In this document: one piece after another, positions 24,106 to 54,309 of the stretch
Layout: each line of letters starts with the position of its first letter
Position numbering within the stretch: position 1 is the stretch's first letter
Source of the DNA: Mobula birostris
Taxonomy: Eukaryota
Length of the DNA: 64,000 bases
Assembly (NCBI RefSeq): GCF_030028105.1
Contig: NC_092401.1
Span: 7,846,984-7,910,983 of the forward strand
Direction of reading: 5' to 3'
Notes under the pieces: model-generated
The model's database searches: none
Told to the model about the DNA's origin: nothing
What the model saw: the letters and a program-made list of their open reading frames with translations, nothing else
Program-made: the position numbers and the translations under genes

Positions 24106-25803
24106 AATCCTTCCCAGTGCAGGAAACACCAAAGAACTGGTCACAAGAAACTGCAGGGGGTGTAGACACAGCTCAGCACATCATGGAAACCAGCCTCCCT
24201 TTCAGAGACTCTGTCTACGTTTCATCTGCCTGAGTACAGCAACTGGCATCGTCAAAAACCCCTCCCACCCCGGACATTCTCTCTTCACCCCTCTCCGTAT
24301 GGGCAGGAGATACAAGAGTCTGAAAGCACATAGCACAGGCTCAGGGACTGCTTCTACCCCACTGTTTCAGTACAATAGACTCTTGACCTCACAACCTGCC
24401 TCATTATGCTCTTGTACCTTATTTTCTGCCTGCACTACACCCTCTGTCACTGTTACACCTTACTCTGTGTTCTGATATTGTTTTCCCTTGTACTGCCTCA
24501 GTGCATTGTGTGATGAATTGATCTGTATGTACAGAAACCAAGACAAGCTTTTCACTGTATCTCTGTACATACGACGATAATGCACTCATTCCAATTCCAG
24601 TTCCAGAGCACAAGCTCCTCTGGCAGTAACCACAATTTCAATGGACTCTCAGAACTATTCTGGCTGCAAGATTATTTGAATTACTCTCCCTCCCAGATCC
24701 GACCTTGTTCTAAATGCAGAGCATAAATGGTAGTCAAGTGTTGAACAAGGGTGGACAAATATATGCCAATATTTATGCATATTTGACACCATATCTCTAC
24801 TTTGAACTTTAATTTTATATTAGTCTTTACTATTGTTGTTTTTGTTGCAGGTCACACCAACACACAGAGAAAATTCCTAATTGTAGATGGCAAATAAAAT
24901 TGATTCTCTCTTTATTAAGATATTTGTTTAAAATGAAGATTGATTTGTCCTTGGCTCTTCTCACCTGCCTTTCACCTCCCCCTGGTGCTCCTCCTCTTTC
25001 CCTTTCTCCTCTGATCAACTAACCCCTCCTATCGGATTCTTCCTTCTCCAGCCCGATACCATTCCCACCCACCTGGCTTCACCTCTCATCTTCTAAATAT
25101 TTTCCTTCCCCTCACCCTATGTTTAATTCTGTTCCTCCCAGAACCGGACATCAATCGACACCAGGGGATGATTAAAAAGCAAGAGAGAGACACCTTGTGG
25201 TCTGGGAAGGGAACTGCAGAGTTTAATACTGAAGGCAGCTGCAAGCACAGCTCCCCCTAGTGCAGGGATGAATCAGCAATGGGCAGTCAGAAAGTCCTCG
25301 GGGAGTTGTGTAACTGGATAACAGGGATAGAAAGCGATCGGATATCGACTATTTAATCCAGAGGATGAGAATGTTGCGAAAGGTGTTGCCTCACATTTTA
25401 TCCACTTGTAACATAATATGAAGACAATATTTGTGTCATTTAAGCAGATAGTTACCACAGAAGTAGATGATTGCAACACGTGAACAAGTCTGTGATCCAA
25501 CGGTAATTTCCATGAGTGGGACGGAAACTTGCCAGGCTCAGATGGCCTTACTGCTGAAATAGTCTCAATGCCCATGTTCAGGTGCTGACTCCGTGTTCGT
25601 AGAAATCCAAATCAACTTTTGAATGAGTTGACTCAAAACAGCCCGGAAATCAACACTCTTGGGAATGAAGTGTCCTTGCATTTAGCACAGTATATGTTGC
25701 CGGTAGACTGTAGTATTAGAATCAGAGTCTCCCTCAATAACAATATTCATAAAATTATTATTTTATCTGTGCAGGATTGAATAATACCATATATATGAGT
25801 TCT

Positions 25804-26036
25804 TTAGTGGTTATTGTTTAGAACTCCGTCTGAATTCACTTCTGTTAAAGGAAAAGATTCCTGATCAATCCCAGAAGGGATTTCCTGATTTTTGTGGGGT
25901 GCTGCATTCTTGACCTCGTAATGCCCTGTTTTCTGAGCTCTGTTTCTTCGGATGCAGGCGACGACCAGCACGACTAACAGTATTAGGATGAATGGCGAGA
26001 TTATCAGCACCATCTTCCAAACATCATCTGGGAAAC
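25804..26036 (-). CDS. Exon 10: TM helix and cytoplasmic tail
   Basis: [47 protein letters not shown]...NNNH*. Acceptor ttttgtgcag. Hydrophobic segment followed by a basic stop-transfer sequence and a GxYxV motif recalling VCAM/ICAM tails. Confidence 0.9.
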
Positions 26037-29000
26037 CTGCACAAAAGCCATTACACAATCATTAACCATCTCAGGCAAATACATCAATTGTCAAACCACT
26101 AATCCTTCTGAGAATCCCGGAATCTTGTAGATTGCATGTACCTTACTGTTTACTCTCCCATGCTTTCTCAGATTTTCTAAAAAACACATACTACACATGA
26201 AACATTTTGACATGGTACTTCACAACCAATGAAAATCATTTCTGAGGAGTAATGACTGTGAAGGCCAAATTTCACCCAGCAAGAGCAGAAACAAACACGT
26301 GGCAATGCCATCATCTGCTTTAATAATGCTGATTGAGGGGCAAATAGTGACCAGGATTCCATTAGAAATCATCTGCTGTTCTTTGCGTTTCTCATTTTGT
26401 TTTAGTTACAAGCCTGAGAAAGCAGGCTGTTTAATGCCTCAGCTGGAAGGCAGCACCTCGGAGAGTGCTCCCTCAGGTTGGAAGCCCGTGATGAGCTGTG
26501 TGCCCAGGGTTCAGAGCTAGGCCCATTGCTGTTTGGTCGAGAACATACAGGGACATGATTAGGAAGTTTGCAGATGACAAGAAGAACAGGTGGCATTATG
26601 GACAGTGAAGATGTTTATCGGGAATTACAGAGAAATCTTGATCAGCTAACTTCTGCCTCTGGGACAAGAGGTGCGGGTTGACCCAGAGCCCGACCTGGAA
26701 CCTACACTTAGAAAGAGGACTCTGCGGCAACCTGTCCATGCTGGATTTCAATCAATCGATCAATAAATAAATGTGAGGTGTTGCATTTTGGAAAGTGAAG
26801 TCAGTGTAGGCCTTTTCACTGTGAACGGCAGAGCCCTAGGGGGTGTTGCAGAACAGAAAGATTGAGGGATCTCGGTTCCCTTAAAGTGGTGCCACAGGCA
26901 TACAGTATGGTGACAATGGCTTTTGGCACACTGACCTTCTTCAGTCAGAGTATCGAGGGTAGCGGGTGTACAGGATGTCAATGGGGCCACATTTGGAATA
27001 GTTTTCCGTCCTGCTTGCCCCTTCATAGGAAAGATGTTGCCACCCTCGCCCGCATCTCCTGCATTTCCCGAACATCCGTGCTCACTCCATTATCTCACCA
27101 GCTTTACAGTGATCAGATCCTCTTGTCCTTATCTACAACCCTCTGCATCCAACACATCATTCTCCTCAACGTCCGCCATCTCCAAAACGATCCTACAGCT
27201 AAACATATCGTTACCTCCTCACTCTCTCTGCAGGGATCAATCCCTCAGTGATTTCCTTCTCCATTTGTCCCTCCCCACTAAACTTTTTCCTGGCACGTAT
27301 CCCTGCAGGACTCACGAAGGGATCTGATTAAGGGTGGCGCGAAATATCAACTGTTTGCTCTTTTCCACAGATTCTGCCTGGCCTGCTGAGTTCCTCCAGC
27401 ACCTTGTTAGAGTTGCTTTGGATTTCTAGCATCTACAGAATTTCCTGTGTTTTCCCATTTGCTGCTTTGCTATTAGTGTGCAGAGGAATAGGGGAAAATA
27501 ATGTATTACAGGATGTCAATTGAAGGAACCAGACAGAAGCTCAGTTTAACACCCCCTATGACAGCTGGTATGTCTGAGACTGCTTTCTCGGTGCTGCACA
27601 AGACACTAGCCTGGTCTTAATGCCCAAGGGGACTCTCTTGGCAGTGCTAGATGGAGTAGGTCATTTTTGGCTGGGCTCTGGACAATTTCAATTTTTCTAT
27701 CACCCTTCTATTAATATATTAAAGTGTCTTTAATACCTTTATATGTTTGAATTTTGAACTTTAATCGATGGAAATGTCTAGACTAAGGAAGGCATTAGCC
27801 GAAGGCAAAGAAACTGAGAATGGAAACGGGATGAGGAAGGTACCTTCGAACAACCTAAACAGCCTCAACTTACTTTGCAAGCTATCTTTAACCTATTGGA
27901 TGAAAAACTCAACAAGAGATTCGTTACACTGGAAGTAATGTTGAAGGAGAATCAGAGTAAATTGATAGCACTTGGAAAAGAGAGAGAGGAACAGCAACGG
28001 CAAATTTCAGAGCTTACTGAAGCAGGCAAACAGAGGGATTCCAGAATGAACTCTTTGGAAAAGAAATTAAATTCGACTACTCATACATTGGAGCAGTACA
28101 AGGCCAAGATTATTGAATTGGAGAGTCATAGTCGCAGACAGAATTCACAAATAATAGGATTCAGAGAAGACGTTGAGAGCGGGGACCACACTAAATTTTT
28201 TTTCTCAATTTTAAATGAAAGTCTTTGGCTCAGAAGTCTTCTCTTCTCCTCTGGTACTCGATCGCGCATCCATCGTTAAAAACAAAACCCTCGAAAGAGT
28301 TACATCCACATCTTGTAATTCTCCAGTTTCACTATGTGAGTATTAAGGAGCACTTAATTCGAATTGCTTGTCGGAAGGGAATTATTGTTCATCAAAATCT
28401 TAAGTTTCGTTTGGTTGAAGATTATTGCCCTGAGGTATTCCAAGAAAGATTGTGTTTTAAATCGGTGATGTCGGATTTATATCAAAGGAATTTTCGACTG
28501 GGATTGTTATACCCCGCCCGCTTAAGAGTTGTTTTACCCGATAACTTGTTTAAGTGGTTTAAAACTGTAGAAGATGCACAACAATTTCTCAAAGAACATT
28601 CCTTGAGCTGGATATTTAACTAATTTACCATTCTTTTGAGTTTGTATACACTTGGTTTATTAGTTAAAAACCAGCATATAGATTCGGACATTTTACGTTC
28701 GTAGAGCTTTGGCCTTGGGCTGAGTCTTCTGGTACTTTGTTTTCACTTATCTCTGCTCTATGTTAATATCCCTTTTCGCTTCCTTGATTATTTTATTTTT
28801 CTTTTATTTTTAAACATCCATTTTAGAAAACTATTACGACTTTGACTTGGTGATCATTTGATTTTTCTTGAAATATTATTAAGATTGTACTCTGTTTTAT
28901 TTCTGAAGACCAGGTTTTTTAAAATGGTCTGTAAAGGGTTGTTCTTTTTTCATCTAACTGTGTTTGGCATTCCATTTGCAATGTTTAGACTATGGGTGGT

Positions 29001-32000
29001 TTTTATTTTATTTTTTATAATTGGAGATTTGCCGTCAAGAGAGATGGGGATTGGTGGTTCTTAGTTAGTTTCCTGGCTGCCTATTGGCCAGGTTTTGGGG
29101 CTTTGTGAGAGGGGTAGGGGGTTATTTTTACTTTAGTTTTTTTCACTTGGGCTGACTTGCAACTACAAAAATGTCTGTATTGTCGTAACTTCTGGTTCCT
29201 CTTTAAACTTTTGTTCCTCTTCCTGATTCGTGAATTTCCTGTGCAATTTGGTTAATCCTTTACTTACCATGTGGTTTATTTAAGGAAAATGGACAATATT
29301 ATTAACTTTGTTTCATGGAACACGAATTGTTTGAAACATCCAATTAAATGGAAGAAGATTTTTAAAACTTTTCAGAGATTGAATGCTCAGATTATTTTTG
29401 CTCAGGAGACTCATGTGAGGAAGGAGGATAATCAGCGTTTTTTTAGGTTTTGGAAAGAATAACAGTTTCCCTCAAACTCATCGACCAAAGAGAAGGTGTT
29501 TCCATTTTTATAGATTCTTCGATCTCATTTGTTCATTATGGTATAATCTCAGACCCATATGGTAGATTTCTATTAATTACTGGTTTACTTCATAACCAAA
29601 AAGTAGTTTTGGTTAATGTTTATGCACCAAATATTGATTATCCTGAATTCTTTAAACATTTATTTGTATCTCTTCCTAATTTAAATGAATATATGTTAAT
29701 AATGGGTGGTGATTTTAATTGTTCTTTGAATCTTATGATGGATAGGTCTGCGCCCAATCAGGCACTTCCAAACAAATCTGCTATTTTTATTAATTCCTTT
29801 TTAGTTCACTCAGGAATTTTAGATGTTTGGAGGTTTTTATATCCTAATGATAAAGAGTTCTCTTTCTTTTCTCATGTATATCATAATTACTCTAGAATCA
29901 ATTACTTTTTTATTGATTCTCGATTAGTTTCATTTGTCACTACCTGTGAGTATTATACAGTCGCCATTTCCAATCATGCGCCTTTGAAACTATCAATTAA
30001 ATTTAGGGATGCAATTTTTAGTACTAGACAATGGTGGTTCAATTCTATTTTGCTTCAAGGTTTAAATTTTGATGATTTTATTAAAGAACAGTTTGCAGTT
30101 TTCTTTTCATCTAACTCAATGAAAGAAATTTCCAGTGGGATATTATGGGATACCTTTAAAGTATATATTCACAGACAAATAATTTCATACTCTGCTGGAA
30201 TGAAAAAACGTATTAATAGTGAAATATATACATTGGCTGATAAGATTACAGAAATTGATAAAAAATATTCCATTGCTCCTAATTTGGAGCTTTATAAAGA
30301 CAGAGTTGAACTTCAGATGCAACATAGTTTGTTATTAACAGCCCCGATTGAAAATCAATTACTTAAAACTAAGAGTCAATTTTACATACATGGTGATAAA
30401 TCAGGTAAATTACTGGCTAATCAATTGAAAGCTGCTTTGGCGAAACATCAGATTAATAAAGTTCGTAGACAGGATGGTAATTTGATGGTTGACCATGATG
30501 AAATTAATAAATCTTTTCAAGAATCTTATACCAATTTATATCAATCAGAATTTCCTGATGATCCTACCATAATGCATGATTTTTTAAGGATACTAAACAT
30601 TCCAAAATTACCAGCTGATGAACGTTTAACATTAGATGCACCCATTACTGAAGAGGAAATAAGGAAAGCAATTTTTTCGATGAATTCTGGTAAAGCACCT
30701 GGCCCGGATGGGTATACAGTTGAATTTTATAAATCTTTTTCAGATGTACTTTCTCCCTGGTTATGTAAAATTTTTAAATATGCCTTATCTGTAAGTAAAT
30801 TATCACAATCCTTTTATGAAGCATCTATCTCATTAATTCCAAAAAAAAGATAAAGATCCCACTGACTGTGCATCATATGGACCTATATCTTTGTTGACTG
30901 TGGATTCTAAAATCTTTTCCAAAATATTAGCAATACTACCACAAATTGTCTCTGAAGATCAGACAGGATTTATTAAAAATCGTTACTCACATTTTAATGT
31001 TAGGAGGCTAATGAACGTTGTATTCATTACTTCAGTTAGAATTCCAGAATGTGCTATTTCGCTTGACTCCGAGAAGACATTTGACAGACTTGAATTGGAA
31101 TATTCATTTGATATACTTCAGGAATTTAAATTCAACTCAAAATTTATATCCTGGATTCAACTGATATATTGTACACCTCTGGCTGCTGTATTTACCAATA
31201 ATCAGAGATCCCCGTTCTTCAGGCATTTTCGAGGTACTAGACAGGGCTGTCCTTTAAGCCTTTTACTTTTTGATATTGCCCTGGAGCCCTTGGCAATTGC
31301 TATTTGTCATTCACCTAATATATTTGGTATTATTCATGGGAATGGGACACATAAAGCATTACTATATGCAGATGACCTGTTACTATATATCTCTAACCCA
31401 GAGAAATCCATCCCTGCAGTAATCACACTATTTGCTCAGTTTAGTAGATTTTCTGGTTATAAATTGAATCTTAAAAAGAGTGTGCTTTTCCCATTAAGTA
31501 TGCAAGTTCCAATTTATAGACAATCACCATTTAGATTAGTTACTGATTATTTTACTTACTTGGGCATTAAAATTACTAAGAAGCACAAATTTTTTACCCT
31601 TAATTGACCATGTTAAACAACTGTTTACTAAATGGTCCCCTTTGTCCTTATCCTTGATTGGTCAAATTAATATTATTAAGATGATTATTTTACCTAAATT
31701 TTTGTATCTACTTCAGGCGGTATCAATTTTTATCCCTAAATCTTTTTTTGATATTATCGATTCTAAAATTTCTTCATATATATGGCAGAATAGAAATCCC
31801 AGGTTAAGTAAGAAATATTTACAGAAATCAAAAAAAGAAGGCGGTTTGGCTTTGCCGAATCTTAGATTTTACTACTGGGCAATCAACATTCGATATTTAA
31901 CGTCTTGGACACAAGAATTGGATGAAGCTCAACGTCCACGATGGATGAACCTCGAGCTGGAGAGTCTGTACAGTGTTTCTCACTGGCTTCTATTCTAGGA

Positions 32001-35000
32001 GCTGTGCTTCCCTTTGCACTTACTAAATTGAATAAACAAATGATAAATCCAATAATTAAACATACAATACGAATATGGTTTAAATTTTGTAAATTCTTTG
32101 GATTGAACAAATTTATCCTGTCAAGTTCTATTATATCTAACTTTTTCTTTCAACCATCTAGAGTTGATCAAGCTTTTCTTCTACGGAAAACAAAGGAAAT
32201 AACGTTTTTGTGATTTATTCATGGATGATTGTCTTATGTCTTTTGAACAGTCGTCTAATAAATATAATTTGCCTAGATCACATTTTTTCAGATATTTACA
32301 GATTAGAAACTTATTGAACACTACTTTATCTACCTTTCTGATATCACATCAAATTGAAGTTACAGAAAAAAATTTTAGGTTAAACCCCTATCAGAAGAGT
32401 TTAATAGCAATTATTTATGATCTGATTATGAAAATACGTCTAGGTAAATCTGATTAAATTAAGTATGAGTGGGAAAGAGAACTTCAAATATCTTTACCTA
32501 CAGAGAAATGGGAAAAAAATTCTTCAGTTAGTCAATACTTCCTCAATGTATGCCAGACATGCCTTGATACAATTTAAGGTATTTCACAGGGCTCATATGT
32601 CCAAGGATAAGCTATCTTGTTTTTATTGCCATATAAATCCTGTTTGTGATAGATGTAATTCTGAGGTAGCTTCCTTGACATATATGTTCTGGTCTTGTTC
32701 TCTTCCAGAAAAATATTGGAAAGATATTTTTGATATTATTTCAGTAGTTCTGCGTATTGATTTACAACCTCATCCTATTACTGCAATTTTTGGACTACCA
32801 GTGATAGACTCTAGTCGTTTATACTTGTCAGCTTGTCGTCTAATTGCATTTGTTACATTAATAGCCAGAAGATCCATTATATTGAAATAGAAAGATTCTA
32901 ATCCCCCCCACTACATTTCAATGGTTTTACCAAACGATAGCATGCCTAAACTTGGAAAAAATTAGGAGTGGTACTATGGATCCTTTGGTTAAATTTGAAG
33001 AAACTTAGAGGCCATTTATTCAATATTTTCACATGATGTAAGTTGACCCTTTCTGGATCCCTTGTAGTAAGTTTTTTGTTCATGAATAGAGGAGTGGAGT
33101 TAACGACAAATAATAATTTTAGCTGATGTAGTATGACAGCCCAAGCTTTGTTTGTTTTTTTTTTAGTTTAGTCTTTTTCCAGTTTAGGGGGCTTTCTTTT
33201 TCTTTAATTATAAAATATCTTTTTCATGGTCAGATACTATGAGATTGGGAGGTAAACTATATTTGTTACTTGGAATCTGCGCTTGTACATGTTAATTGTT
33301 ATTATTGTAATCCGGATCTCTATATATCATTACTATTCCTGTTATGTTTAATTTTGAAACTTAATAAAAAGATTTAAAAAGAAAGGATTTAAAGCCCAAG
33401 ATACAAGAGAGGGATTGAACCTCCAATCTCCCGACTCGAGGCAGGAGGACTATCCGACGAGCTACACACCATCTGGTGTAGAGAGAGATTGTACACCTTT
33501 GCTTATCCTGGGCATGTCATAACTCTCAGCATTTACTCGTGATCACACAGGGATGATATCTCGGCTCTGAAAGGGTTATTTATTTATTTTCTCATCCATG
33601 CACTGCGACAAAGGTAACTTACGGACCTTCCATCTTGATTTCCACTTGCTTCTCATCTGTTCCAAATTTATTGCTGGCTCTACACTTGTAAATTCCTTGA
33701 TGTTCTGATGTTGCCTGGGGAATGTGGAGAACCCCAGGAAGGTCAGTTTCCCCTGTGACTCCCTGACCGGAACTTTCCAACTTCAGTGTTACCTGGGGGT
33801 TTCCACTGGAGTGACAGGTGATTGTAACTTCATCATTTACTCTGATGAAGACTGAAAACCTGGACACGGTTTTGTTATTTACTGATATAGTTGTGTTTCG
33901 TGGTTTATCTGGAAAAGAGTGAAAAGAGTGAAATTAACCAGCAACAGTACAGCACGGGGTGGGCCCTTTTTCCCATGATGTTGTACCGACCTTTATAAAC
34001 CTATTCCATCAACAACCCAACCCCTCCCTCCTACACAGCCCATCGTCCTCCATTCTTCTTTCATTCACGTGCCTATCTAATTCTCTTAAATGTCCCTTAT
34101 GTATCCGGCTCAACACCCTCCCCTGACAGTGCAGTCCAGACACTTCCTACTGACTATGTAAAGACCTGCTTCTGACTCCGTGGCTCACCATAAAAGGATG
34201 TCCTCTGCTACAGCCATTACCTGCCGGGGAATTAGGCGCTGGCTGTCCACTCTTCCTACGCCTCTTACAATCTTACACAATCATCCTCCTTGGCTCCAAA
34301 GAGCTCACTCAGCCTTTCCACAGAAGACAGGCTCTCTAATCCAGGCAGCATCCTGGTGAATCTCCTCTGCACCATCTCTAAAGCTTCCTCGTCTTTCCCA
34401 TAATGAGGCGACTGGACATCACTACACTGTGACTCCAAAAGGCTGGAAAATCAAATTTGACTGTGTGCTGAGCTCACTTGTGCCTGGCAGCTCATTCCAC
34501 ACTGTCACAACTCCTCTGAGTGAAGAATGTTCCCCTCATGTTGACCTTAAACTTCTCAGCTTTCACCCCTACCTCATGACCTCTGGTTGTGACCCACCCA
34601 ACCTCAATGGAAAAAGCCTGCTTACATTTACTCTATCGATACCCCTCATAATTTTGTATACCTCTATACAATTCTTCTCAATCTTTTACATTTAAGGAAT
34701 AAACTCCTAGTAATAAATAAAGGTATTTATTACAGCATTTTTCCTTCCTAGAGTCTATAACTATTTTACCTGATTTAGCAATCAATGATATCTATTAACC
34801 CCATCACGTCACTGCACTGAAAACACTTTAAACCATTTTTGATAATGTTGTTCACATTGTAAATCCATGCGTGTATTTCAATATTTATTTAAGTTTTATT
34901 CCACATTCATGCTTTAAAATTTATTTTTATATAATTCTCTGTAAGTGTTGAATGTTGTTGTATTTTGTCACAGTCACACACTCACCAACACACCAGAGCA

Positions 35001-38000: not shown

Positions 38001-41000
38001 GCCTTGGCAGTCAAAGTGAAGGATAATCCAAGGGGCTTTTACAAGTATATTAAGAGCAAAAGGATTGTAAGGGATAAAATTGGTCCTCTTGAAGATCAGA
38101 GTGGTCGGCTTTGTGCGGAACCAAAGGAAATGGGGGAGATCTTAAATAGGTTTTTTGCGTCTGTATTTACTAAGGAAGCTGGCATGAAATCTATAGAATT
38201 GAGGGAATCAAGTAGTGAGACCATGGAAACTGTACAGATTGAAAAGGAGGAGGTGCTTGCTGTCTTGAGGAAAATTAAAGTGGATAAATCCCCGGGACCT
38301 GACAGAGTGTTCCCTCGGACCTTGAAGGAGACTAGTGTTGAAATTGCGGGGGCCCTGGCAGAAATATTTAAAATGTCGCTGTCCACGGGTGAAGTGCCGG
38401 AGGATTGGAGAGTGGCTCATGTTGTTCCGGTGTTTAAAAAAGGATCGAAGAGTAATCCGGGAAATTATAGGCTGGTGAGTTTAACATCAGCAGTAGGTAA
38501 TTTATTGGAGGGAGTACTAAGAGACAGAATCTACAAGCATTTGGATAGACAGGGGCTTATTAGGGAGAGTCAACATGGCTTTGTGCGTGGTAGGTCATGT
38601 TTGACCAATCTGTTGGAGTTTTTTGAGGAGGTTACCAGGAAAGTGGATGAAGGGAAGGCAGTGGATATTGTCTACATGGACTTCAGTAAGGCCTTTGACA
38701 AGGTCCCGCATGGGAGGTTAGTTAGGAAAATTCATTCGCTAGGTATACATGGAGAGGTGGTAAATTGGATTAGACATTGGCTCGATGGAAGAAGCCAGAG
38801 AGTGGTGGTAGAGAATTGCTTCTCTGAGTGGAGGCCTGTGACTAGTGGTGTGCCACAGGGATCAGTGCTGGGTCCATTGTTATTTGTCATCTATATCAAT
38901 GATCTGGATGATAATGTGGTAAATTGGATCAGCAAGTTTGCTGATGATACAAAGATTGGAGGTGTAGTAGACAGTGAGGAAGGTTTTCAGAGCCTGCAGA
39001 GGGACTTGGACCAGCTGGAAAAATGGGCTGAAAAATGGCAGATGGAGTTTAATACTGACAAGTGTGAGGTATTGCACGTTGGAAGGACAAACCAGCGTAG
39101 AACATACAGGGTTAATGGTAAGGAACTGAGGAGTGCAGTGGAACAGAGGGATCTGGGAATACAGATACAAAATTCCCTAAAAGTGTCATCACAGGTAGAT
39201 AGGGTAGTAAAGAGAGCTTTTGGTACATTGGCCTTTATTAATCAAAGTATTGAGTATAAGAGCTGGAATGTTATGATGAGATTGTATAAGGCATTGGTGA
39301 GGCCGAATCTAGAGTATTGTGTTCAGTTTTGGTCACCAAATTACAGGAAGGATATAAATAAGGTTGAAAGAGTGCAGAGAAGGTTTACAAGGATGTTGCC
39401 GGGACTTAAGAAACTCAGTTACAGAGAAAGGTTGATAGTTTAGGACTTTATTCCCTGGAGCATAGAAGAATGAGGGGAGATTTGATAGAGGTATATAAAA
39501 TTATGATGGGTATAGATAGAGTGAATGCAAGCAGGCTTTTTCCACTGAGGCAAGGGGAGAAAAAAACCAGAGGACATGGGTTAAGGGTGAAGGGGGAAAA
39601 GTTTAAAGGGAACATTAGGGGGGGCTTCTTCACACAGAGAGTGGTGGGAGTATGGAATGAGCTGCCAGATGAGGTGGTAAATGCGGTTCTTTTTTTAACA
39701 TTTAAGAATAAATTGGACAGATACATGGATGGGAGGTGTATGGAGGGATATGGTCCGTGTGCAGGTCAGTGGGACTAGGCAGAAAATGGTTCGGCACAGC
39801 CAAGAAGGGCCAAAGGGCCTGTTTCTGTGCTGTAGTTTCTATGGTTTCTATTAGCCAACCTGAGGTCCCCAAAAGTGCCTGACGAAGAGTCAAAAGCCTG
39901 AGTAAAACTCAACAGCCTTTAGTGTTGATAATCAGATCACTTACACTGGACATCGAGAGTGGCTGACTGCCGTTTAACAATGGTGTTGGAGTGATGGTGA
40001 AGTGTCAGCTCGGCCTCGCAGGTGAACTGCTGTCCATTCAGCTCTGCTCGTGGATTCACAGTGTGGTAGATAGTCAGCCCAATACTGGCTGACCTGTTCA
40101 CTAATATCTCACTTCCCTTCTTCAGTCTGAGTTGAAGTTCCCCTGAGACGTTAAACACACTGCAGGTAATATTCACTGGAATTCCCTCAGTGGTGATCGG
40201 GATTTGGATTTCAGGGTTGGAGAAAACTGTAACAACAGAGAACATTGTTAGAAACTTTCTCAAAGTGAGCTCTGCATCCCTTCTGTGCCACTAGACCGGG
40301 GTAGTCAACCTTAAGCACAAATGATTTACTAGCATGCGTTATTCATTAATTTGAGGAAAAGCATAACTAGATGTATTTAAATGGGTATTTCCCATGTTTC
40401 AAGTTTTTTATGGCATTTATCTGCCCCACCGTCCGCTCATTAATACGCGATCCTACCCACAGAGGCAAAAACCCCTGACCCCTGCACTAGACTGAGGTAG
40501 CAAATGGAACTCTTTTGAAGTCTGTCTGTGGTACAGCACCCACCTACCTCACTGTGTGTCTAGTGGCTAAAGAAGGTGCTGTGGGAATTATGAAAAACCC
40601 TTCCCACAGTTTGATCCATTTGCTGGCAGACTTTAATCTCACTTTCAGTTTCTATCTCTGACAAATTCAATTGCCAGTATTTGATTTTTCATTCTCTTTC
40701 TGCAATACTATATAAATATGTATATCTTACTGTAATTTATAATTTGTTCTTGTTATCATGCATTGTATTGTACTGCTGCTGCAAAACAATAAATTTCATG
40801 ACATGTGCCAATGGTGTTGAACCTGATTCTGATTAATGTCCAGGCTTATTCTCATGCTCCATTGAACCTGCTCCATTGATAAACCCATGGCTAAATAACT
40901 ACATCCAATTCAAAGGTTCATTTTATTGTCAAAGTTTGATACAGAATACAACTCTGGTATTCGTCTTCTCCAGATAGCCATGACATTCAGAAAAACTGTG

Positions 41001-44000
41001 GGCATTGTTGAAAGAAAAGTCATTGACATCCCCCTCCCCATGAAAAAGGTAAAGAAACAAAACTGGCAAACCCGCCCACCCCACCCCTCCTTTGCACAAA
41101 AACTAATGGATCGCCCACATAGAAAACAGCAGCTGGAACATCAAACCCCAAACCTCCCAACCCCTCCCTCACACAAAAATTATCAGATCGCCAACATGGA
41201 AAACAGCAGCTTGAACAAACACCAAACCACCAACCTCGTGAACAAAACAGCAACAATAATATCAAACCCTGACCTCCCAACTCCCTGCCTTAAAATCTAT
41301 TTTCCTTTTTCCCTGTAATTCTATTGATTTCTATTTCAAATATTGATTAACTGAGAATCTGCTCCGTGTTGCTGCCTGTTGACAGTCTAGGAGCAGGTGG
41401 GAAACTCTGAAAGATTACTGTCTAGTCAAAGTGCTCAATTATCCAGCATACTTACCGTACATGTCAATGGTAATGCTATCATTCTTTGATGAAACTGATG
41501 GATAGTCCTTAAAATCTGCCATACAGTTGAGTTCAGTCACACCGGTCTCTCGTGGTGTCCATGTAGCTGTTTCCTGGACTGTGGTGAGATTTGATCTACT
41601 GGCAACTGAATTCCATTCCTCACCATCCTGAAACCACCTTAATCTCACCTTCTCAGCAGGGTAGATGTTTGAGACCTCACATGTCCATGTGGTCTCCTGA
41701 TTTACTTCTACAGGGTCTCTGTTGAGGATCCTTGGAGACTCTGGAAAAGCTGCAATACACACAAGAAATTCACTGCATATTGGTTTGCCTTGGCCTGTTT
41801 CAGACACTGATGGAATGATGCAAAACTGACCAAACCTCTATAAGCCTCTGTACACAACCAGGAGTTCATCAAACCGACGTCAGTATCAGCAGGTTCCATA
41901 CTATGCTCTTTCTCTGAACTCTTTCTGCTCTTCAGGCATCCCAAAAATCTAACTCTGCTCCTCCCATGGGCAGTGATACAGGAGTAACGTTCACTGACTT
42001 ATCAAGAGTGTGATCTCAATGAGCAGCTAGTTTGGGGTGGCACGGTAGTGTAGTGGTTAGCACAACGCTTTACAGTGCAGGTGATCCATGTTCAATTCCC
42101 GATGCTGCCTGTAAGGAGTTTGTACGTTTTCCTGTGACCGTGTGGGTTTCCTCCCACAGTCCAAAGATGTACTGGTTGGTGGGTGAACTGGTCATTGTAA
42201 ATCGTAGTGTGATTAGGCTAGGGTTAAAATGGTGGATTGGTGGGCAGCGTGACTCGAAGGGCCGGGAGGGCCTATTCTGTGTTGTTGTCTTTCAATCTAT
42301 TTTGTTCTGCCCATACTGGCCCAAGAGAAGGGCTGATCCCTAAAAAAGGATCATGATTTTGCCCGGGACCGCAGGACCTGAGTTATGTGGAAAGATTGAA
42401 TAGGTTAGTACTTAATTCCTTGGAATGTAGAAGATTGAGAGGAGATATGATAGATTTATACAAAATTGTGAGGGGTATAGATAGGGTAAATGCAAGCAGG
42501 CTTTTCCCACAGAGGTTGGGTGGGACGACAACTAGAGGTCATGGGTTAAGGGTGAAAGGTGAAAAGTTTAAGGGGAACATGAGGGGAAACTTCATTCAGG
42601 TGGCTGTGAGGATGTGGAACGAGCTGCCAGTGCAAGTGGTGCATGTGAGCTCGATTTCAACATTTAAGAGAAGTTAGGGTAGGTACCTGGTTGGTAGGGG
42701 TATGGAGGGCTGTGGTGCTGATGCAGATTGACGGGAGCAGGTAGATTAAATGGTTCAGCACAAACTAGGTGGGCTGTACTTTTCTATGACTCTATCTATT
42801 ACCACCACCTGCACTGACCACCAAGAGGAACACGGGAGTATCAGGTAAGAGTGCAGAATTTGCAGAAGTTTGGAATTGTTTCAGTGATCTTCAGCCAAAT
42901 AATCTCTTCTACTTCCATGGTTCTCTGAAGTTGTAAACTTTCTGTCTCCGTTCAAGATAAACAAGAACAGATAAAACAAGAACTAAATGTGAAAGCTTTC
43001 AAAACAGGACCGCTCATTGCTTATTCTTGCCAATCTTTAACCAATGTGGGGAGAGGTTAAGGGGCAGTTTGATTTCAAAATGGAACTCACAGTACGTTTG
43101 CAGAGTTACAGATGCGTTTGTGATCCGTTTGGTCGTGTTAGGGCCTAAGTTCAACTCTGCCAAGCAGGTGTACACCAGTCCATCATCTGAAATACTTGGA
43201 CTGAAATTAAAGATGTTCTTCAGTTGACCATCATCTGGGAAACCTGGTTCCTCTGTGGAAATACGTTCTACAACCTCACTCCTTCTGAACCAGGTGAGTA
43301 CGAGTTTGTTCTTTGGATAGACCTTCGGGCCGGTACACTCCAGCTGATATGGTTTGTTAACTTCCAGCACGTCAGGAGGTGGAACAATGCTTATCTCTTG
43401 ATCTGTTAAAGGAGAATCATGTTAACAAAATTCATTCAAATTACAAATCTAGATTATACTTGTATCAAACTCAAGAAAATCTGCAGACACTGGAAATCCG
43501 CAGCAACACACACAAAATGCTGGAGGAACTCAGCAGGCCAGGCAGCATCTATGGAAAAGAGTGAACAGTCAATGCTTCGAGTTCAGACCCTTCATCAGGT
43601 TTGGTAAAAGAAGGGGAGAAGTCAGAACAAGAAGGTGGGAGGAGGGGAGGAAGAAGTACAATGTAAGTGAAAGGGGACACCAGGAACGGGGAGGGGGTGA
43701 AGTTAAGAGCCAGGAAATTGATTGGTGAAAGGGATACAGTAAAGGGCTGGGGAAGGTGGAATCTGATAGGAGAGGATCAAAGACCACGGAAGAAAGGGAA
43801 GGGGGAGGAGCACCACAGGGAGGTGATGGACGGGTAGGGAGATAAGGTGAGACAAGGAACAGGAAAGGGGAATGGTGAAGGAGAGAAGGGAGGCCAATTC
43901 AATGTTCATGCCATCAGGTTGGTAGTTACCCAGACAGAATATTTGTTTCCTTCTCTCACCCGATTTCCTTGCCTGCCCAGTTTCACCCATCACCTGCCAC

Positions 44001-47000
44001 CTTGTACTTCCTTCTTCCCTCCCCCAACTTCTCGTTCTGACTTCTCAGTCCTGAAGAAGGATTTCGGCCCAAAAAGTTGAATGTTTGCTCTTTTCCACAG
44101 CTGCTGCCTGGCCTGCTGAGTTCCTCCAGCATTTTGTACTTGTCCCACCTTTCTTTCCATTCACTGTCATTTCAGGTGACTTCAGAACTTTGAAATACTC
44201 CTTAATATTAAGCCTAACTTCATTAAAAATTTCTTCAAACTTTAATGAATGTCACTAACAAGTGGTGCTCAAGTGTAAAGTTATTTTACCATACATATGT
44301 ACACCACCAAATGAACCAACATCCCTCTGGAGCAAGGTGCACAACACAGTACACATACAGTAAACTCACAGACTACACATAAAGTAATATTACCACAAGT
44401 AACAAGGTGCATTTACAGCACAAGTTAAAATGTAAGCAGTATAATGCTACTGGTGCTTCACACCTGATGAGGCCTGGGTGGTGGCAGGGAGTTCAGTAAT
44501 CTTACAGCCTAGGGGAAGAAGCTCTCTCCCATCCTAACAATACCTGTTTTGATACTACAGTAACCCGTGTCTGATAGTAGGGGTCAAAGAGACTGTTGGA
44601 CGGATGGCAGGGATCATTGTCGATGCTAAGGGCCCTGCATACCTAGCACTCCTGATAAATATCTTCCATGGGTGGAAGAGAGACCCAATGATCCTTTCAG
44701 CAGTCCTTACAATTATTTGTATGGACTTACGGTCAGGTGCCTTGCAATTCCCGTACCAGATAGATATGCAGCTGGTCAGGACACTCTCAATGGTGTTCCT
44801 GTAAAAATTGTTAGCATGGGGTGGCGGGACAGGGTGGGGGTGTGGGAAATGGAAAGCCTTGCTTGCCCCCAATCTCCTCAGGAAATGGAGATGCTGTTGT
44901 ACTTTCTTATCCAAAGAAGTGGTGTTGAGGGACCAGGTGAGACTGTCCATTACGTGCACCCCCAGAAACTTGGTGCTCCTAACTCTATCCACAGAGGAGC
45001 CAAGTCTGCAATCCTCTTTTTAGCGAAGAGCAATAGTACGTGGGCCAGGCCTGGAAATAACACAATTTCTTCAGTCCAGAGTTCTCATGATAGTCCAAAT
45101 ACAGAAGCATCACATTGCTTTTCAGTAACTTTTGTCAGTTTGAGCAAAGTCTAAGAGAACAGTGGGTTAACAAGAGATGAGGTGATGATGTGATCATTGT
45201 AATCCAATATGAGGCACTGTGGATCAAATCCATCCAGAAGTAATTCATTTCTTAACTTAAGCCTGCAATCCCTCACGTAGAAAAATATTTACTTTTGTTT
45301 TTGTATTTGCACAGTTTGTTGTCTTTCGCACACTTGTTGTTTCTCTGCCGTGTTGGATGTGGCCTTTCATTGATTCCATTGTGTTTCTTGGATTAACTGT
45401 GCCCACAAGAAGGTGAATCTCCAGGTTGTATATGGTGACATGCTGCATGTAACACCCCAGGAAAGGTTTCACTGCTGACGTAATGGTCTTTCTGTAGAAG
45501 CTGTGTTTGGGTTATGGTTAGAGATAACGGGGTGCTGTGGAATGTGATCCGTCCAATGAAGGGAGTGTGTTTCGTGTTGTGTGCCTGACACCGGGGTGAG
45601 TTGGGTCTTTTGTTAGGCAGGGATGAAGGGAGAAGTTGCCGGAGAGAAGAGGTCATAAGACCCGACCCAGAGTGGGCCCATGAATGGACGAAGCCCGGCG
45701 TGACCGAAGGAGGGTTGGCAACGTGAGCTCCAACTTGTGCACATTAGACTATTTCATTAAAATTGTCCCTTTTCTTTTTTTGCTTTTTCTTTACTAACCC
45801 TTTAGTTGAAATGAAGATTATAAAGCTGAATTGTTTAATTGCATGTGGTGTACTATCTGTTATTTCGTGTTACCTATTTGTAACAGGGTAACAAATCACG
45901 CAGCATCCACGCCAACAGGGGCTTCGGGGTGGGCTCGCGGCTCAATCTCACACGTTTGGTAGAGCCGGAGATTGTATTGCCTAGATTTACGCAGCCATCG
46001 GAACCAGAGCGTTTCAATTGTGGGGGTATCATCTGGGATCGATTTCGTTGGATGTTGTGTAATTGCCCTGAGCATTGATCCTGTACGTGGTTATGGATGC
46101 TGTCGGGGTTGAGCAGTGGTGCGAATCCATGTATCCCTGATGAATTATTAATTGGAATTTTAAGTACTGTTAAAGCTGCAGGACAAGTTACGATTGTGGA
46201 GTGGAAGTTTGATTAAACGGCAGGTTTCGGCTGTTTAAGTCCAGACGAGCGCTGACGTAACGCAGTGCTCCCTGCTACTACTGGGGCTACGGGGGGGTGG
46301 GGCATGAGCTGTCCACACTTTCCGGGAAGAGGAGAGTGTAGGGAAGTGGGCCGAATCGCAAGTTGAGTCTCCCGTAGCTGGGGATGGAGACTTCAAAGAC
46401 AGGGTGTTCTCGTTTCCGCGGAGCGAGGGGAAGCAGTGGTCTTATTTGGAATGTCCAATGAGTCCCCGAGCGAGGACAGAGAATTCTGAGTTGATAGCAG
46501 TCCTTACATCTCTGGCGAATAAATGGAAAAATGCCCAGGTTCAAAGTCCCAGCTATGGTAGGCTCTGCCTGTTCTCAGGAAGGAAGCCCACCCCTAAAGG
46601 GGAAGAGGAGGATGAGATTTGGGTGGAGCAGACCTCCCAGTTGTGAGATGAGTGACAGTGCTCTGATAACGTTAGACAACAGCGATTGGTTGAAAGTTTG
46701 AGTGGGCGGGCTGATGACGTAGTGAGAACCCCCTTGCCACTTCTGCAGCCGACATGCAAGCGCTAGGAAAGGTGTTTGGTGTGACGGGAAGCCCAATCGA
46801 GCTCATGACGGGGTTTCAGATCGTGCGTCAGGAAGAGGGGGAGAAGCTTTCCGCCTTCATCTTTCGGCTAGAGAGGCAGCTAAATTGTTTGCGGTGTAGA
46901 GAGGCCATTCAGACGGCTGAGGTGAATCAGTTAAGGACGGACCAAATAGCAAAAGGCGCCCACTCCCAGAACCTGATCGCCTGGGGTCTCTGACTGTCTG

Positions 47001-50000
47001 GTAAGACGTGCCCCCCTCCATCGTTTGTTGAGCTGATCAGAGAAGTACAAGAGGAGAGAATGCATCCATCAGCAGGGTACAGTCCTCGGTAGTGGGCCTT
47101 TTGTTGAAGTGACCACAGGTAACTTGCCCCGGGGAATGGTAGATGAGATTGTGGCAGAGTTGAGAACTGAGATGTCCCGGTTGTTATCAGAGGGTGTGCC
47201 CCCCCCCCCATAATGGTGCTGATAGGGAGGCCCTCTGAGGAGACGGACAATGCAGGGGGCTGCAAGTGGCCAGGGTCCGGTATTGTCCGCTATAACTGTG
47301 TGAAGAGAGACACCAGGCGGGAGTGTGAACGATGGAAAACCCTTCGGAGAGTGTGTCCCCGGGTACCTAAGCAGAGAGAGACATTGGGAAAACTTAGAAG
47401 AGACCTAGTGAGGGAATTGCCTGGCGTGTCGGGGGAACACATTCCCAGCAATATATCAACGAACACCCCACAGAAAAAATCCTATTCCCGAAGAGTTAGT
47501 GGGGCCAAGCTCCAGTGTATCACTGCAGATAGAGGGTATTTATACTAGAGCCATACCGGGCACAGGGTCGCAGGTCACTTTGCTGTACTGCTCGTTTTAC
47601 AACCAGTATTTGACACAATTACCATTGCCACCATTCAGTGCACAAGAGATCTGGGGACTCTGTGCGGATGTGCAAGTGGCTGAGGCCCTCGATACATTAG
47701 TGCTGATTTGTCTGGACCCTGTTGAGAGGGTCAGAATTTCACTTCTTTTAGGGACAAATACTTCTATTGGTATGAGGCTAATGGGAGCCTGCAAAGAGAG
47801 AACTGGAGGGAGCTTTCTAAAGACATTGTCTGTTCACCTGGTGTTTCAAGCTGCTCTCGAGGAAGTATGTGGCCACACTGGGCAGGATAATGAGCTTAGA
47901 CAAGGGACTGTGTGGTTTACCCAGTCAAAACCAATTGTGTTGCGGCCTGGGTAAGTAGCGAGAGTGATGGGAAACCCCAAATTTGCCAGATTGCCCGACG
48001 GCGAGGCCCGCTTAGTGAATGCTCCAGAAGACCACGAGGAGGAGTCGGGATTATCTGCTGGGGTTCTAGTGAGGCCCAAACTGCAGAAGCCCTTGGTTCT
48101 ACAGGCAAACAGGATGGCAGTGGCTCTCAGGAACACTATGAAGAGAGAGGTCACCTTCAAGCAGGGGATGCCCCCGACGCATCTCTTTGCGGTGACGGTC
48201 ATGAGACAAGCCAGAGGGAAACTATCTGCAAAAGGGGGAAAGTTGACCACTGAGTTATTCAAATTTGGGTAATCCCTGGTACCTGCGGGCTGGAAGACAT
48301 GATGTTGAAGCTGGAAGGTGTCTTTTCCACTGACGAGTTTGATGTGGGTTGTTCCAAGAGCACTCATCACACTATCCGTGTGACTGAGGACAGCCCGTTC
48401 AGAGAAAGGTCACGGTGACTGGCCCCTGCACAGGTGGAGGACGTTCGGCAGCACTTGTGCAAGTTGAAGGAAGCTGGGATCTTCAATTAGCCCAGAATCC
48501 CCTATGTGTCCCCAATAGTCATAGCCAGGAAGAAGAATGGGAAGGTACGGATGTGTGTGGTCTATAGGACTCCGAACAGTACAGCCCTAACCAGTATACT
48601 GTCCCGAGTATTGAAGACGCGCTGGCCTGCTTGAGTGGTGCAAAGTGGTTTAGTGTGCTGGACTTGAGGAGTGGATATTACCAGATCCCCATGAGTGAGG
48701 CTGACAAAGATAAGGCGGCATTTATAAGTCCACTGGGATATTCCAATTCGAAAGGATGACCCAGGGCATATCGGGACCCTCTGCGACCTTCCAGCGAGTC
48801 ATGGAGAAAACGATGGAGGATATAAACTTGGTGTATTGGTGTATCTGGATGAATTCATAGTCTGTGGTCAGCGGTCAGAAAAGGAGATATGGCCCAGGCG
48901 GAGAAGATGAAACACGTTGTGGTACCTCCATTACTGAGAGAATGGCTCAGATTGGAATTGAGGAACCAGATCCTATTCCGGGTCACGTCGCCTATGGACC
49001 ACCCTCAACATTCCCAGCTGGTTCTGCCTGAGAAGTATCAGAGGATGTGTTGAAGTCACTTCATGATGACTCTGGACATCTGGGGGTTGACAAGACCTGT
49101 GGATTGCTCAGAGATTGGTTTTACTGGCCCCAAATGAAACTGGAGGTGGAAGAATACTGCAGGTCGTACATTCGATGCATACAGAGGGAGACGCTGCCTA
49201 TGAGGGCCACTCCGTCGTCCCACTTGCAGAGTGTGGGACTCCTTGACCTGGTGTGTATGGATTCCCTATCAATAGAGCCAGGTGCAAGCAACGTGGCGAA
49301 TGTCTCAGTCATCACAGATCACTACACCAGGTATGCTCAAGCTTTCCCTACTAAGATCAGAGGGCATCCATGGTGGCCAAAGTTTTATGGGAGAGGTATT
49401 TCATTTGTATGGTATCCCCAGGTGGATACATAGTGATCAGGGATGAGATTCCGAGAGTAGGCTCATACATGAGTTACTGAGCATGCTCAGAGTCGAGAAG
49501 TCAAGGACTACTCCGTATCACCCGCAGGGTGATCCCTGCCCGAGAGGTTTAATTGGACCTTGCTAGACATGCTCGGAACCTTGGAAATCAGCAAGAAGAA
49601 CAAGTGGAGTCAACACATTGGACATCTGTTTCACTGCTACAACTGTACACGAAATGCAACTACCGGGTACTTGCCATATTATCTGATGTTTGGACACGAG
49701 ACAAGGTTGTCCATTGACCTTTGTTTTGGGACTGGTGAGGATGACATTCTCCCTGTCATCACGTGGGTTTCCTCCGGGTGCCCTGGTTTCTTCCCACAGT
49801 CCAAAGACATACCGGTTGGGAGGTTAATACAACCTCAATGCAAGAAGTATCAGGAACAAAGGTGATGAACTGAGAGCTTGGATACATACATGGAATTGTG
49901 ATGTAGTGGCCATTACAGAGACTTGGCTTGCACCAGGGCAGGAATGGATTCTCAATATTTCTGGATTTCAGTGCTTTAAAAGGGATAGAGAGGGGGAAAA

Positions 50001-53000: not shown

Positions 53001-54264
53001 CCTTGCACATCTTAAAATCTTCACTCTGTCATTCACCCTCTACCCCGTCCCACAAACAGTCAGGTCCGCATTGGGACCTTGCTGTGTGTGGACTGAGAAT
53101 ACTGTTCACCATTGTACAGCAGGACACTAAAGTACAATGGCCCCATGTGTCTCCACAGTACTGATGCATCAAAATAGGAGAGATGATTGATCCAGTCAAA
53201 CACTCCCAAAACAACACACACACAATGCTGGAGGGACTCAGCAGGTTAGGCAGCATCTATGGAAACGACACTTCAAGCCGAGACCCTTCTTCAGCACTGG
53301 AAAGGAAGGGGGAAGACTGCAGGACACTCCCGTAGTTTGAAGAGTTCTGTATGGAGTGGGAGGAGCGCTTGTTGTTCGTTCATCTGCATTTGAAATAAAG
53401 AACTCAACAGCCTTTGGTGTTGATAATCAGATCACTTACACTGGACATCGAGAGTGGCTGACTGTCGTTTAACAATGGTGTTGGAGTGATGGTGAAGTTT
53501 CAGCTCGGCCTCGCAGGTGAACTGCTGTCCATTCAGCTCTGCTCGTGGATTCACAGTGTGGTAGATAGTCAGCCCAGTACTGGCTGACCTGTTCACTAAT
53601 ATCTCACTTCCCTTCTTCAGTCTGAGTTGAAGTTCCCCTGAGACGTTAAACACACTGCAGGTGATATTCACCGGAATTCCCTCAGTGGTGATCGGGATTT
53701 GGATTTCTGGGTTGGAGAAAACTGTAACAACAGAGAACATTGTTAGAAACTTTCTCAAAGTGAGTTCTGCAGCCCTTCTGTACCACTAGACTGAGGTAGC
53801 AAATGGAACTCTTTTGAAGTCTGTCTGTGATACAGCACCCACCTACCTCACTGTGTGTCTAGTGGCTAAAGAAAGTGCGGTGGGAATTATCAAAATTCCC
53901 CCCCCCCCACAGTTCCCAGCATCATTCACTCCTGACCCAATCTCATCAAGGCAAATGACACACTGGTTCAGTGCATCCGACAGAGTGGAACTTTGCAGCA
54001 CACATACACATACACACACGTAAACACACACACATATACACGCTCGTAAACACACACACATATACACGCTCGTAAACACACACGTATACACACAGATTTA
54101 TTTACAATGTCTTTGAGTCTGAGCAATCCTGGAAAAGCTGTCATTCACCATCACAACAGGGTTGACTTGGCCAGTAACCAGCCAGTGGTTTCTCAGTCAT
54201 TTCAGATGGCACTTTGCCTTCAAAGCAATGGTAAATAATCCACAGAATTAATTCCTTGTGTATG

Positions 54265-54309
<45 letters not shown>

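Follow-up and report, generated by a model that had tools for sequence, protein, structure and literature searches.

The last immunoglobulin (Ig) exon of an adhesion gene in the giant manta ray, Mobula birostris, may be a point at which membrane and secreted forms of the protein are chosen at the RNA level. The gene lies in a 64,000-nucleotide stretch of contig NC_092401.1 (hereafter the window, to whose positions all manta coordinates refer) and, by its exon layout and domain matches, is an eight-Ig ICAM/VCAM-like adhesion gene. We propose, with about even confidence, that its last Ig exon (D8) is either spliced to the exon for the transmembrane (TM) segment or ended at a proximal polyadenylation (poly(A)) site, as a composite terminal exon in an IgM-like competition, and that this choice is ancient in elasmobranch ICAM/VCAM-like genes. 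The proposal starts from what is directly established, namely the letters themselves, the gene model, and the conservation both of an AATAAA hexamer shortly after the D8 donor and of a pyrimidine at donor position +3. From these we infer use of the hexamer, a competition between donor and poly(A) site, secretion of the truncated product, and a role for it as a soluble integrin ligand or decoy.

In the proposed mechanism, if U1 recognizes the unusual donor AAG/GTCCGT, the 7.6-kb last intron would be removed and the TM/cytoplasmic exon joined, giving the membrane protein of the NCBI model. Should splicing at this donor come too late, the cleavage and polyadenylation factors would recognize the AAUAAA that lies 39 nt inside the intron and cleave about 15-25 nt beyond it, and the frame of the short mRNA would stop two residues on (...KMEGP*, the asterisk marking a stop) to give a secreted eight-Ig protein. 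A Mobula-specific donor 4 nt downstream would, if used, yield a nearly identical truncated protein. The mechanism itself is already known, as are soluble ICAM and VCAM in mammals; the novelty lies in a candidate switch at the RNA level for the cartilaginous-fish ICAM/VCAM-like family, marked by a hexamer that has persisted since before the shark-ray split.

Conservation after the last Ig exon

Homologous DNA loci were compared from Stegostoma (L001), Narcine (gene A, L002; gene B, L004), Pristis (L003) and Heptranchias (L005); the DNA comparison did not extend to M. hypostoma, the M. birostris paralogues, Hypanus, Hemitrygon, Carcharodon and Mustelus, and so left out the closest species. The intron alignment comprises Mobula, Pristis, both Narcine genes and Heptranchias and so spans four orders, three batoid and one of hexanchiform sharks (orders confirmed for Narcine, Pristis, Heptranchias and Mobula). 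In these five sequences the longest invariant run of the intron is AATAAAT (Mobula 33588-33582; columns 39-45), and shuffling of the invariant columns produced a run of at least seven in 58 of 100000 trials. The first 100 nt after D8 are clearly similar between the shark and the batoids (z = 4.3-13.4), whereas the control introns are not (z = -0.9 to 1.1 after D1 and 0 to 1.4 after D2). Among themselves, batoids keep the intron starts after D1 to D3 as well, with z up to 17, so that conservation seen in batoids only proves little.

Other features of the intron start are also shared. A second AATAAA about 95 nt into the intron is common to Pristis and Heptranchias and is replaced by AGTAAA in Mobula, and a U-rich stretch with an invariant CTT directly follows the donor. 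No AATAAA or ATTAAA occurs within 120 nt after any of the other seven Ig-exon donors; by chance, an AATAAA would be expected to start at +25 to +60 with a frequency of 3% for the gene and 6.7% for the AT-rich last intron, where the hexamer has a density of 2.2 per kb. Two marks of IgM-type switching are thus found here, an AAUAAA directly after the possible terminal exon and conservation of that signal beyond the neutral background. The conserved block was considered as a repeat and rejected as one, being single copy with BLAST matches at orthologous positions only, and no Rfam family matched it at E up to 0.1. About 5.8 kb of the manta intron (33394-27612) are absent from Pristis, and the start of this part is a tRNA-like stretch (about 33470-33400), resembling a short interspersed element (SINE), directly after the block.

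The donor of D8 is conserved in an unusual state. Position +3 is a pyrimidine (C or T) in all six last-Ig donors, and the other Ig-exon donors recovered at these loci, 21 in number, all have a purine (A or G) there; within the manta gene, the seven other Ig-exon donors all read GTAAG or GTGAG, leaving D8 as the sole exception. The first-pass annotation of this DNA had built its switch from a weak donor, an immediate stop, overlapping AATAAA hexamers, a TGTGTG element and a competing GTAAGT donor. The comparison with relatives upholds part of that picture, since the AATAAAT run and the +3 pyrimidine are shared, but the stop, the TGTGTG and the GTAAGT are confined to Mobula.

Donors, stops and candidate signals at the end of D8

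On the minus strand D8 ends ...ATG GAA G/GTCCGTAAGT, with AAG preceding the cut, and GTCCGT, the TAA at 33621-33619, the AATAAA pair, TGTGTG and GTAAGT were all found where the annotation had placed them. Translation agrees with it that the unspliced frame ends in EGP* at this TAA, and that the downstream GTAAGT, when joined to 26036, gives EGPFPR* with loss of the TM segment.

Splice-site strength was judged by U1 duplex energy and by matches to the consensus. The duplex with the U1 5' end has an energy of -6.1 kcal/mol for the in-frame GTCCGT and -5.7 kcal/mol for GTAAGT, and the other donors of the gene range from -5.5 to -11.2 kcal/mol (D1, -6.4; D2 and D5, -5.5). Both sites match the consensus at 6 of 9 positions, the AAG on the exon side of the in-frame donor compensating for its odd +3 and +4. 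The in-frame donor is non-consensus in its letters, as had been claimed, and unlike its seven sister donors, but its energy lies within their range, so that the claimed weakness is borne out only in part. Similarly, the competing donor deserves the term consensus for its intron side, GTAAGT, but has TCC on its exon side, occurs only in Mobula and scores no better than the in-frame site.

In Mobula alone, +4 has changed from A to C and GTAAGT has been gained; the relatives have GTATGT, GTGTGT, GTTGTT or GTTTTT in its place. GTCCGT followed by AAGT fits the GYNNGY pattern of tandem donors, with GY at +1/+2 and +5/+6, and GT at +5/+6 is part of the donor consensus itself. The idea of two independent routes to a soluble form is accordingly weakened, as the second route, through a donor that is Mobula-only and has TCC on its exon side, is speculative. 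Downstream, the TM exon can be entered in frame at either of two acceptors separated by 9 nt, gtgcag/GTTTCC (start 26036, as in the NCBI model) and tttcccag/ATGATG (start 26027). In Pristis, both Narcine genes and Heptranchias the only acceptor aligns with 26027, and the first AG seems to have arisen in the Mobula lineage.

The immediate stop, to which significance had been attached, is ordinary and was rejected as a signal. Read-through tails of two residues are found at four of the eight Ig-exon donors (D1, D4 and D7 besides D8), and of five residues at D3 and D6; short tails are usual for the phase-1 GTAAGT donors of this gene, and the stop itself is Mobula-only. The tails after D8 read GP* in Mobula, GQYVTLVTIHRCK* in Pristis, GQFLILVTTHLKE* in Heptranchias and GSCVILLVKYR* in Narcine B, and that of Narcine A runs to 31 residues. 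In four of the five sequences a stop thus comes ahead of the first hexamer or within it, and in Narcine A the frame continues beyond it. The TGTGTG fares no better as support. Candidate U- or GU-rich elements are this TGTGTG (33549-33544) in Mobula and TTTTTGGGG in Narcine A, neither of them conserved along the alignment; a role for TGTGTG as a conserved downstream element was rejected on its presence in Mobula only among the five sequences.

Gene structure, relatives and soluble proteins

The exon model was built by listing in-phase acceptors and donors for every Ig block. Joined and translated, it agrees at every residue with positions 24-874 of P0159, which NCBI names 'vascular cell adhesion protein 1-like [Mobula birostris]' (Table 1). 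The NCBI model of P0159 also uses the 33627-to-26036 junction, and the eight-Ig model and junction proposed at the outset thus coincide with it. Each phase-1 exon corresponds to one Ig domain, and a single final exon holds the TM segment, a hydrophobic run followed by RRNR, and a short cytoplasmic tail. A Pfam scan of the open frames matched PF03921 ICAM_N (E = 3.8e-8; 33.3 bits, cut-off 21) and, twice, PF21146 ICAM1_3_5_D2 (36.5 and 33.0 bits, cut-off 27.5). The 3' untranslated region can be aligned to Pristis as far as 25154.

Two further observations concern the gene as a whole. The manta protein ends ...NNNH*, and several paralogues and orthologues run on through an extra exon (...NNNHSQTN...AQIKQ), indicating that the manta cytoplasmic tail is shortened. 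The D2-D3-D4 exon cassette is duplicated internally (39945-57610, minus strand) with uneven divergence, as the identities of 79/103 (D2/D5), 88/97 (D3/D6) and 91/93 residues (D4/D7) illustrate.

Table 1. Features of the manta gene and of the D8 exon end (window coordinates), with the possible products
Feature	Position	Strand	Remarks
Signal-peptide exon	60901-60967	minus	ATG at 60967; end ACAG/gtaggt; first 22 residues of P0159 map here
Ig exon D1	58084-57818	minus	phase 1, GTAAG or GTGAG donor
Ig exon D2	57610-57299	minus	phase 1, GTAAG or GTGAG donor
Ig exon D3	55368-55075	minus	phase 1, GTAAG or GTGAG donor
Ig exon D4	53721-53440	minus	phase 1, GTAAG or GTGAG donor
Ig exon D5	43402-43091	minus	phase 1, GTAAG or GTGAG donor
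Ig exon D6	41749-41456	minus	phase 1, GTAAG or GTGAG donor
Ig exon D7	40226-39945	minus	phase 1, GTAAG or GTGAG donor
D8, last Ig exon, I-set-like	33908-33627	minus	both ends phase 1; Pfam Ig_2, Ig_3 and I-set matches
Last intron	26037-33626	minus	7590 nt, 36% GC
In-frame donor GTCCGT, AAG on exon side	33621-33626	minus	departs from consensus at +3 and +4
TAA closing the unspliced frame (...KMEGP*)	33619-33621	minus	relatives without this stop, tails 11-31 residues
Donor-like GTAAGT, TCC on exon side	33617-33622	minus	4 nt downstream of in-frame donor
Conserved block, 5' end of last intron	33480-33626	minus	alignments A1, A2; single copy
Two overlapping AATAAA	33588-33583, 33584-33579	minus	+39 and +43 from donor; proposed proximal poly(A) signal
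TTTCAG	33572-33567	minus	TTT invariant; possible cleavage region
TGTGTG	33549-33544	minus	possible downstream element; Mobula only
AGTAAA	33532-33537	minus	aligns with second AATAAA of Pristis and Heptranchias
TM and cytoplasmic exon	25804-26036	minus	stop TAA 25806-25804; coding 26036-25807
Candidate distal poly(A) hexamers, membrane mRNA	24911-25357	minus	ATTAAA starts 25357, 25227, 25127; AATAAA start 24916; located by offset from stop codon
D8-homologous donors			GTCAGT in Pristis, Narcine A and Heptranchias; GTTCGT in Narcine B; GTCAGA in Stegostoma; GTCCGT in Mobula
Donor sequences (Mobula)			AAGGTCCGT, TCCGTAAGT
Product, no splicing (read-through)			...KMEGP*
Product, donor 33627 + acceptor 26036			in frame, TM segment included
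Product, donor 33627 + acceptor 26027			...KMEDDVWKM... + TM segment
Product, donor 33623 + acceptor 26036			...KMEGPFPR*
Product, donor 33623 + acceptor 26027			...KMEGP*

A library-wide protein search with the last Ig domain found relatives that form a shark and ray ICAM/VCAM-like family. In all of them the last Ig domain and the TM segment lie 1-6 residues apart, and there is therefore no need for a hidden exon that would correct the phase within the last intron, an idea that was rejected; an unrecognized exon between 33623 and 26036, which the first-pass annotation had named as a possible objection, is not indicated.

Among these relatives, Narcine bancroftii gene A (L002; sites 45995, 55531, 57540, 58121 and 77105) has five NCBI isoforms, of which one uses a TM exon at 57540 and four lack the TM exon after the homologous last-Ig exon. 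The terminal exon of the fourth TM-less form, which ends ...SKG*, was not located, unlike the small terminal exons of the other three at 55531, 58121 and 77105. In Stegostoma tigrinum (L001, 10479-12672) the last-Ig homologue belongs to a 144-residue NCBI 'limbic system-associated membrane protein-like' model that splices to a tiny exon within SINE-like sequence; a TM exon was not found within 10 kb, and the locus is possibly a gene fragment. At the protein level, the plasma proteome of the nurse shark contains VCAM1- and ICAM-annotated proteins, and the VCAM1-annotated one rises after immunization (PMC9207270), which shows that soluble family members exist in a shark, by whatever route.

Alternative explanations and known systems

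Several observations weigh against a choice between splicing and intronic polyadenylation. The U1 energy places the in-frame donor level with D1, D2 and D5, so that the label 'weak' is not established; suboptimality is suggested by the universal +3 pyrimidine and the C at +4 in Mobula, and is countered by an energy inside the range of the gene. A GU-rich downstream element occurs in Mobula only. Because batoids conserve other intron starts too, the case depends largely on one shark sequence, and the conserved block is absent from the Stegostoma homologue. The manta gene has a single NCBI isoform, the membrane form, and protein searches over fragment, mid-size and full-length ranges returned NCBI gene models only and no transcriptome-derived sequences. 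The TM-less isoforms of Narcine A, which might have been taken as proof of read-through, were rejected as such, as they use other terminal exons (L002 55531, 58121 and 77105). Finally, the 3' end of the last intron is conserved as well, and the block could serve splicing control instead. The choice envisaged by the annotation, yielding an eight-Ig protein without a TM segment, is in sum favored by the invariance of AATAAAT, the +3 pyrimidine and the exact gene model, but the immediate stop, the TGTGTG and the 4-nt donor do not hold up as support, and U1 energy does not rank the in-frame donor below D1, D2 or D5. Also in its favor are the position of the stop relative to the hexamer in four of the five sequences, the TM-less isoforms of a relative, Narcine A, and the plasma proteins of the nurse shark.

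The most serious alternative, which we nevertheless consider somewhat unlikely, is that D8 is constitutively spliced to the TM exon, that the block including AATAAAT is an intronic splicing-control element aiding an odd donor and a long intron, and that any soluble protein arises by proteolytic shedding. Such an element would suit the similarity between shark and rays at both ends of the last intron: in the roughly 100 nt upstream of the TM exon (gattgtgtaatggcttttgtg..., about 26038-26140, minus strand) z is 6.1-16.3, compared with -0.4 to 6.8 for the intron ends before D1, D2 and D8. The last intron is special at both ends, which fits regulated processing of whatever kind. A pairing of the two conserved blocks was rejected, as their duplex energies fall within those of shuffles (z = -1.9 to +0.8). 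Splicing control would also agree with the U-rich stretch and invariant CTT right after the donor, the NCBI model of a membrane form only, the failure to find a conserved GU-rich downstream element in the alignment, and the position of shedding as the main known source of soluble ICAM-1 (sICAM-1) (PMC10215618). It explains less readily why the top invariant run should be exactly the canonical hexamer plus T, why the second AATAAA is kept in both Pristis and Heptranchias, and why an in-frame stop precedes or falls inside the hexamer in most of the sequences. Moreover, we know of no splicing factor with AAUAAAU as its site.

A second alternative, quite unlikely in our view, is that Mobula mainly uses TCC/GTAAGT, that the mRNA is frameshifted (...EGPFPR* or ...EGP*) with a mainly soluble product or a decaying gene, and that the NCBI junction was chosen for its frame. 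GTAAGT pairs six contiguous bases of U1, whereas GTCCGT forms a split helix of similar energy, and the loss of A at +4 and the gain of GTAAGT belong to Mobula alone. In human tandem donors 4-nt shifts are the commonest kind (PMC8055015), and one of the human sICAM-1 mRNAs results from a frameshift immediately upstream of the TM region (PMC10215618). The stop would lie in the last coding exon, where nonsense-mediated decay would not be expected. The exon side TCC, however, has no consensus match at all, and the TM/cytoplasmic exon has stayed intact and closely resembles its counterparts in the paralogues and in M. hypostoma, arguing that the in-frame junction continues to be used. That nothing here is functional, hexamer and donor being neutral remnants in elasmobranch introns that evolve slowly, seems very unlikely: the batoid introns of this gene do align widely (about 80% identity), intron starts after D1 to D3 are kept among batoids and AATAAA is frequent in the last intron, but the strong shark-ray similarity after D8 and its absence after D1 and D2, the rarity of an invariant run of seven in shuffles and the +3 pyrimidine in 6/6 against 0/21 donors all speak against it.

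Sharks and rays separated some 250-300 million years ago. In a bolder version, which we hold to be doubtful and offer only tentatively, the decision between membrane and secreted forms through intronic polyadenylation directly behind the last Ig exon would be ancestral in the elasmobranch family (roughly 250-300 million years), both intron ends would take part in its control, and circulating adhesion-molecule decoys of cartilaginous fish would be programmed at the RNA level rather than being a by-product of shedding. In manta rays the choice would have been reinforced, with three RNA routes reaching ...KMEGP, namely read-through, the 4-nt donor joined to 26027, and the 4-nt donor joined to 26036 with three extra residues.

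In mammals, soluble ICAM and VCAM are measured widely as markers of inflammation and attributed mainly to shedding. A hard-wired, deeply conserved RNA route in cartilaginous fish, if true, would imply that the soluble form has been selected, with its own regulation, and would extend the IgM-type switch to an adhesion molecule in the oldest immune systems of jawed vertebrates. It would also provide a rule for annotating the expanding shark and ray gene clusters, in which a short isoform that terminates behind the last Ig exon would be expected. The conserved 3' block of the last intron is a candidate regulator.

Among the closest known systems is the IgM heavy chain, whose donor is internal to the C-mu-4 exon and whose secreted form ends in a functional tailpiece. 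The manta donor, in contrast, is a normal exon end, the tails in four of the five aligned sequences comprise 2-13 unconserved residues (Narcine A has 31), the use of the site is only proposed, and the gene families are unrelated beyond the Ig fold. What the two share is an Ig exon, an intronic poly(A) signal and one or more TM exons downstream, the loss of which gives a secreted protein in the choice between the IGHM mu-s poly(A) site and M1/M2 splicing; IgM and other composite-terminal-exon events have been described (PMC5928244). In sFlt1 (intron-13 polyadenylation), too, a poly(A) site within an intron turns a multi-Ig membrane receptor into a soluble decoy, and conserved intronic cis-elements of FLT1 regulate splicing and polyadenylation reciprocally (PMC2926593). 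That case concerns a receptor tyrosine kinase and is experimentally shown, whereas the manta gene encodes an adhesion ligand and its switch is only proposed. The sFlt1 poly(A) sites lie much further into their intron.

Other systems resemble single parts of the proposal. In intron 3 of CstF-77 (CSTF3) a conserved poly(A) site goes together with a 5' splice site that is weak, and the U1 small nuclear ribonucleoprotein exerts control (PMC3708835), but its product is non-coding or autoregulatory, and its intron is very large with the site far from the donor. GYNNGY tandem donors share with the manta site GT at +1/+2 and +5/+6, 4-nt shifts being the most frequent (PMC8055015); such pairs usually give frameshifted transcripts that are seen as noise or decay targets, whereas the manta stop would fall in the last coding exon. 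In mammals sICAM-1 derives mostly from shedding, and an intronic poly(A) route is not described in the review PMC10215618. Human ICAM-1 and the manta gene belong to a common family by Pfam (ICAM_N, ICAM D2), and an alternative mRNA for human soluble ICAM-1 resembles the 4-nt route of the manta, as it lacks a few bases where the last Ig exon ends, which leads to a frameshift and a stop before the TM segment (PMC10215618).

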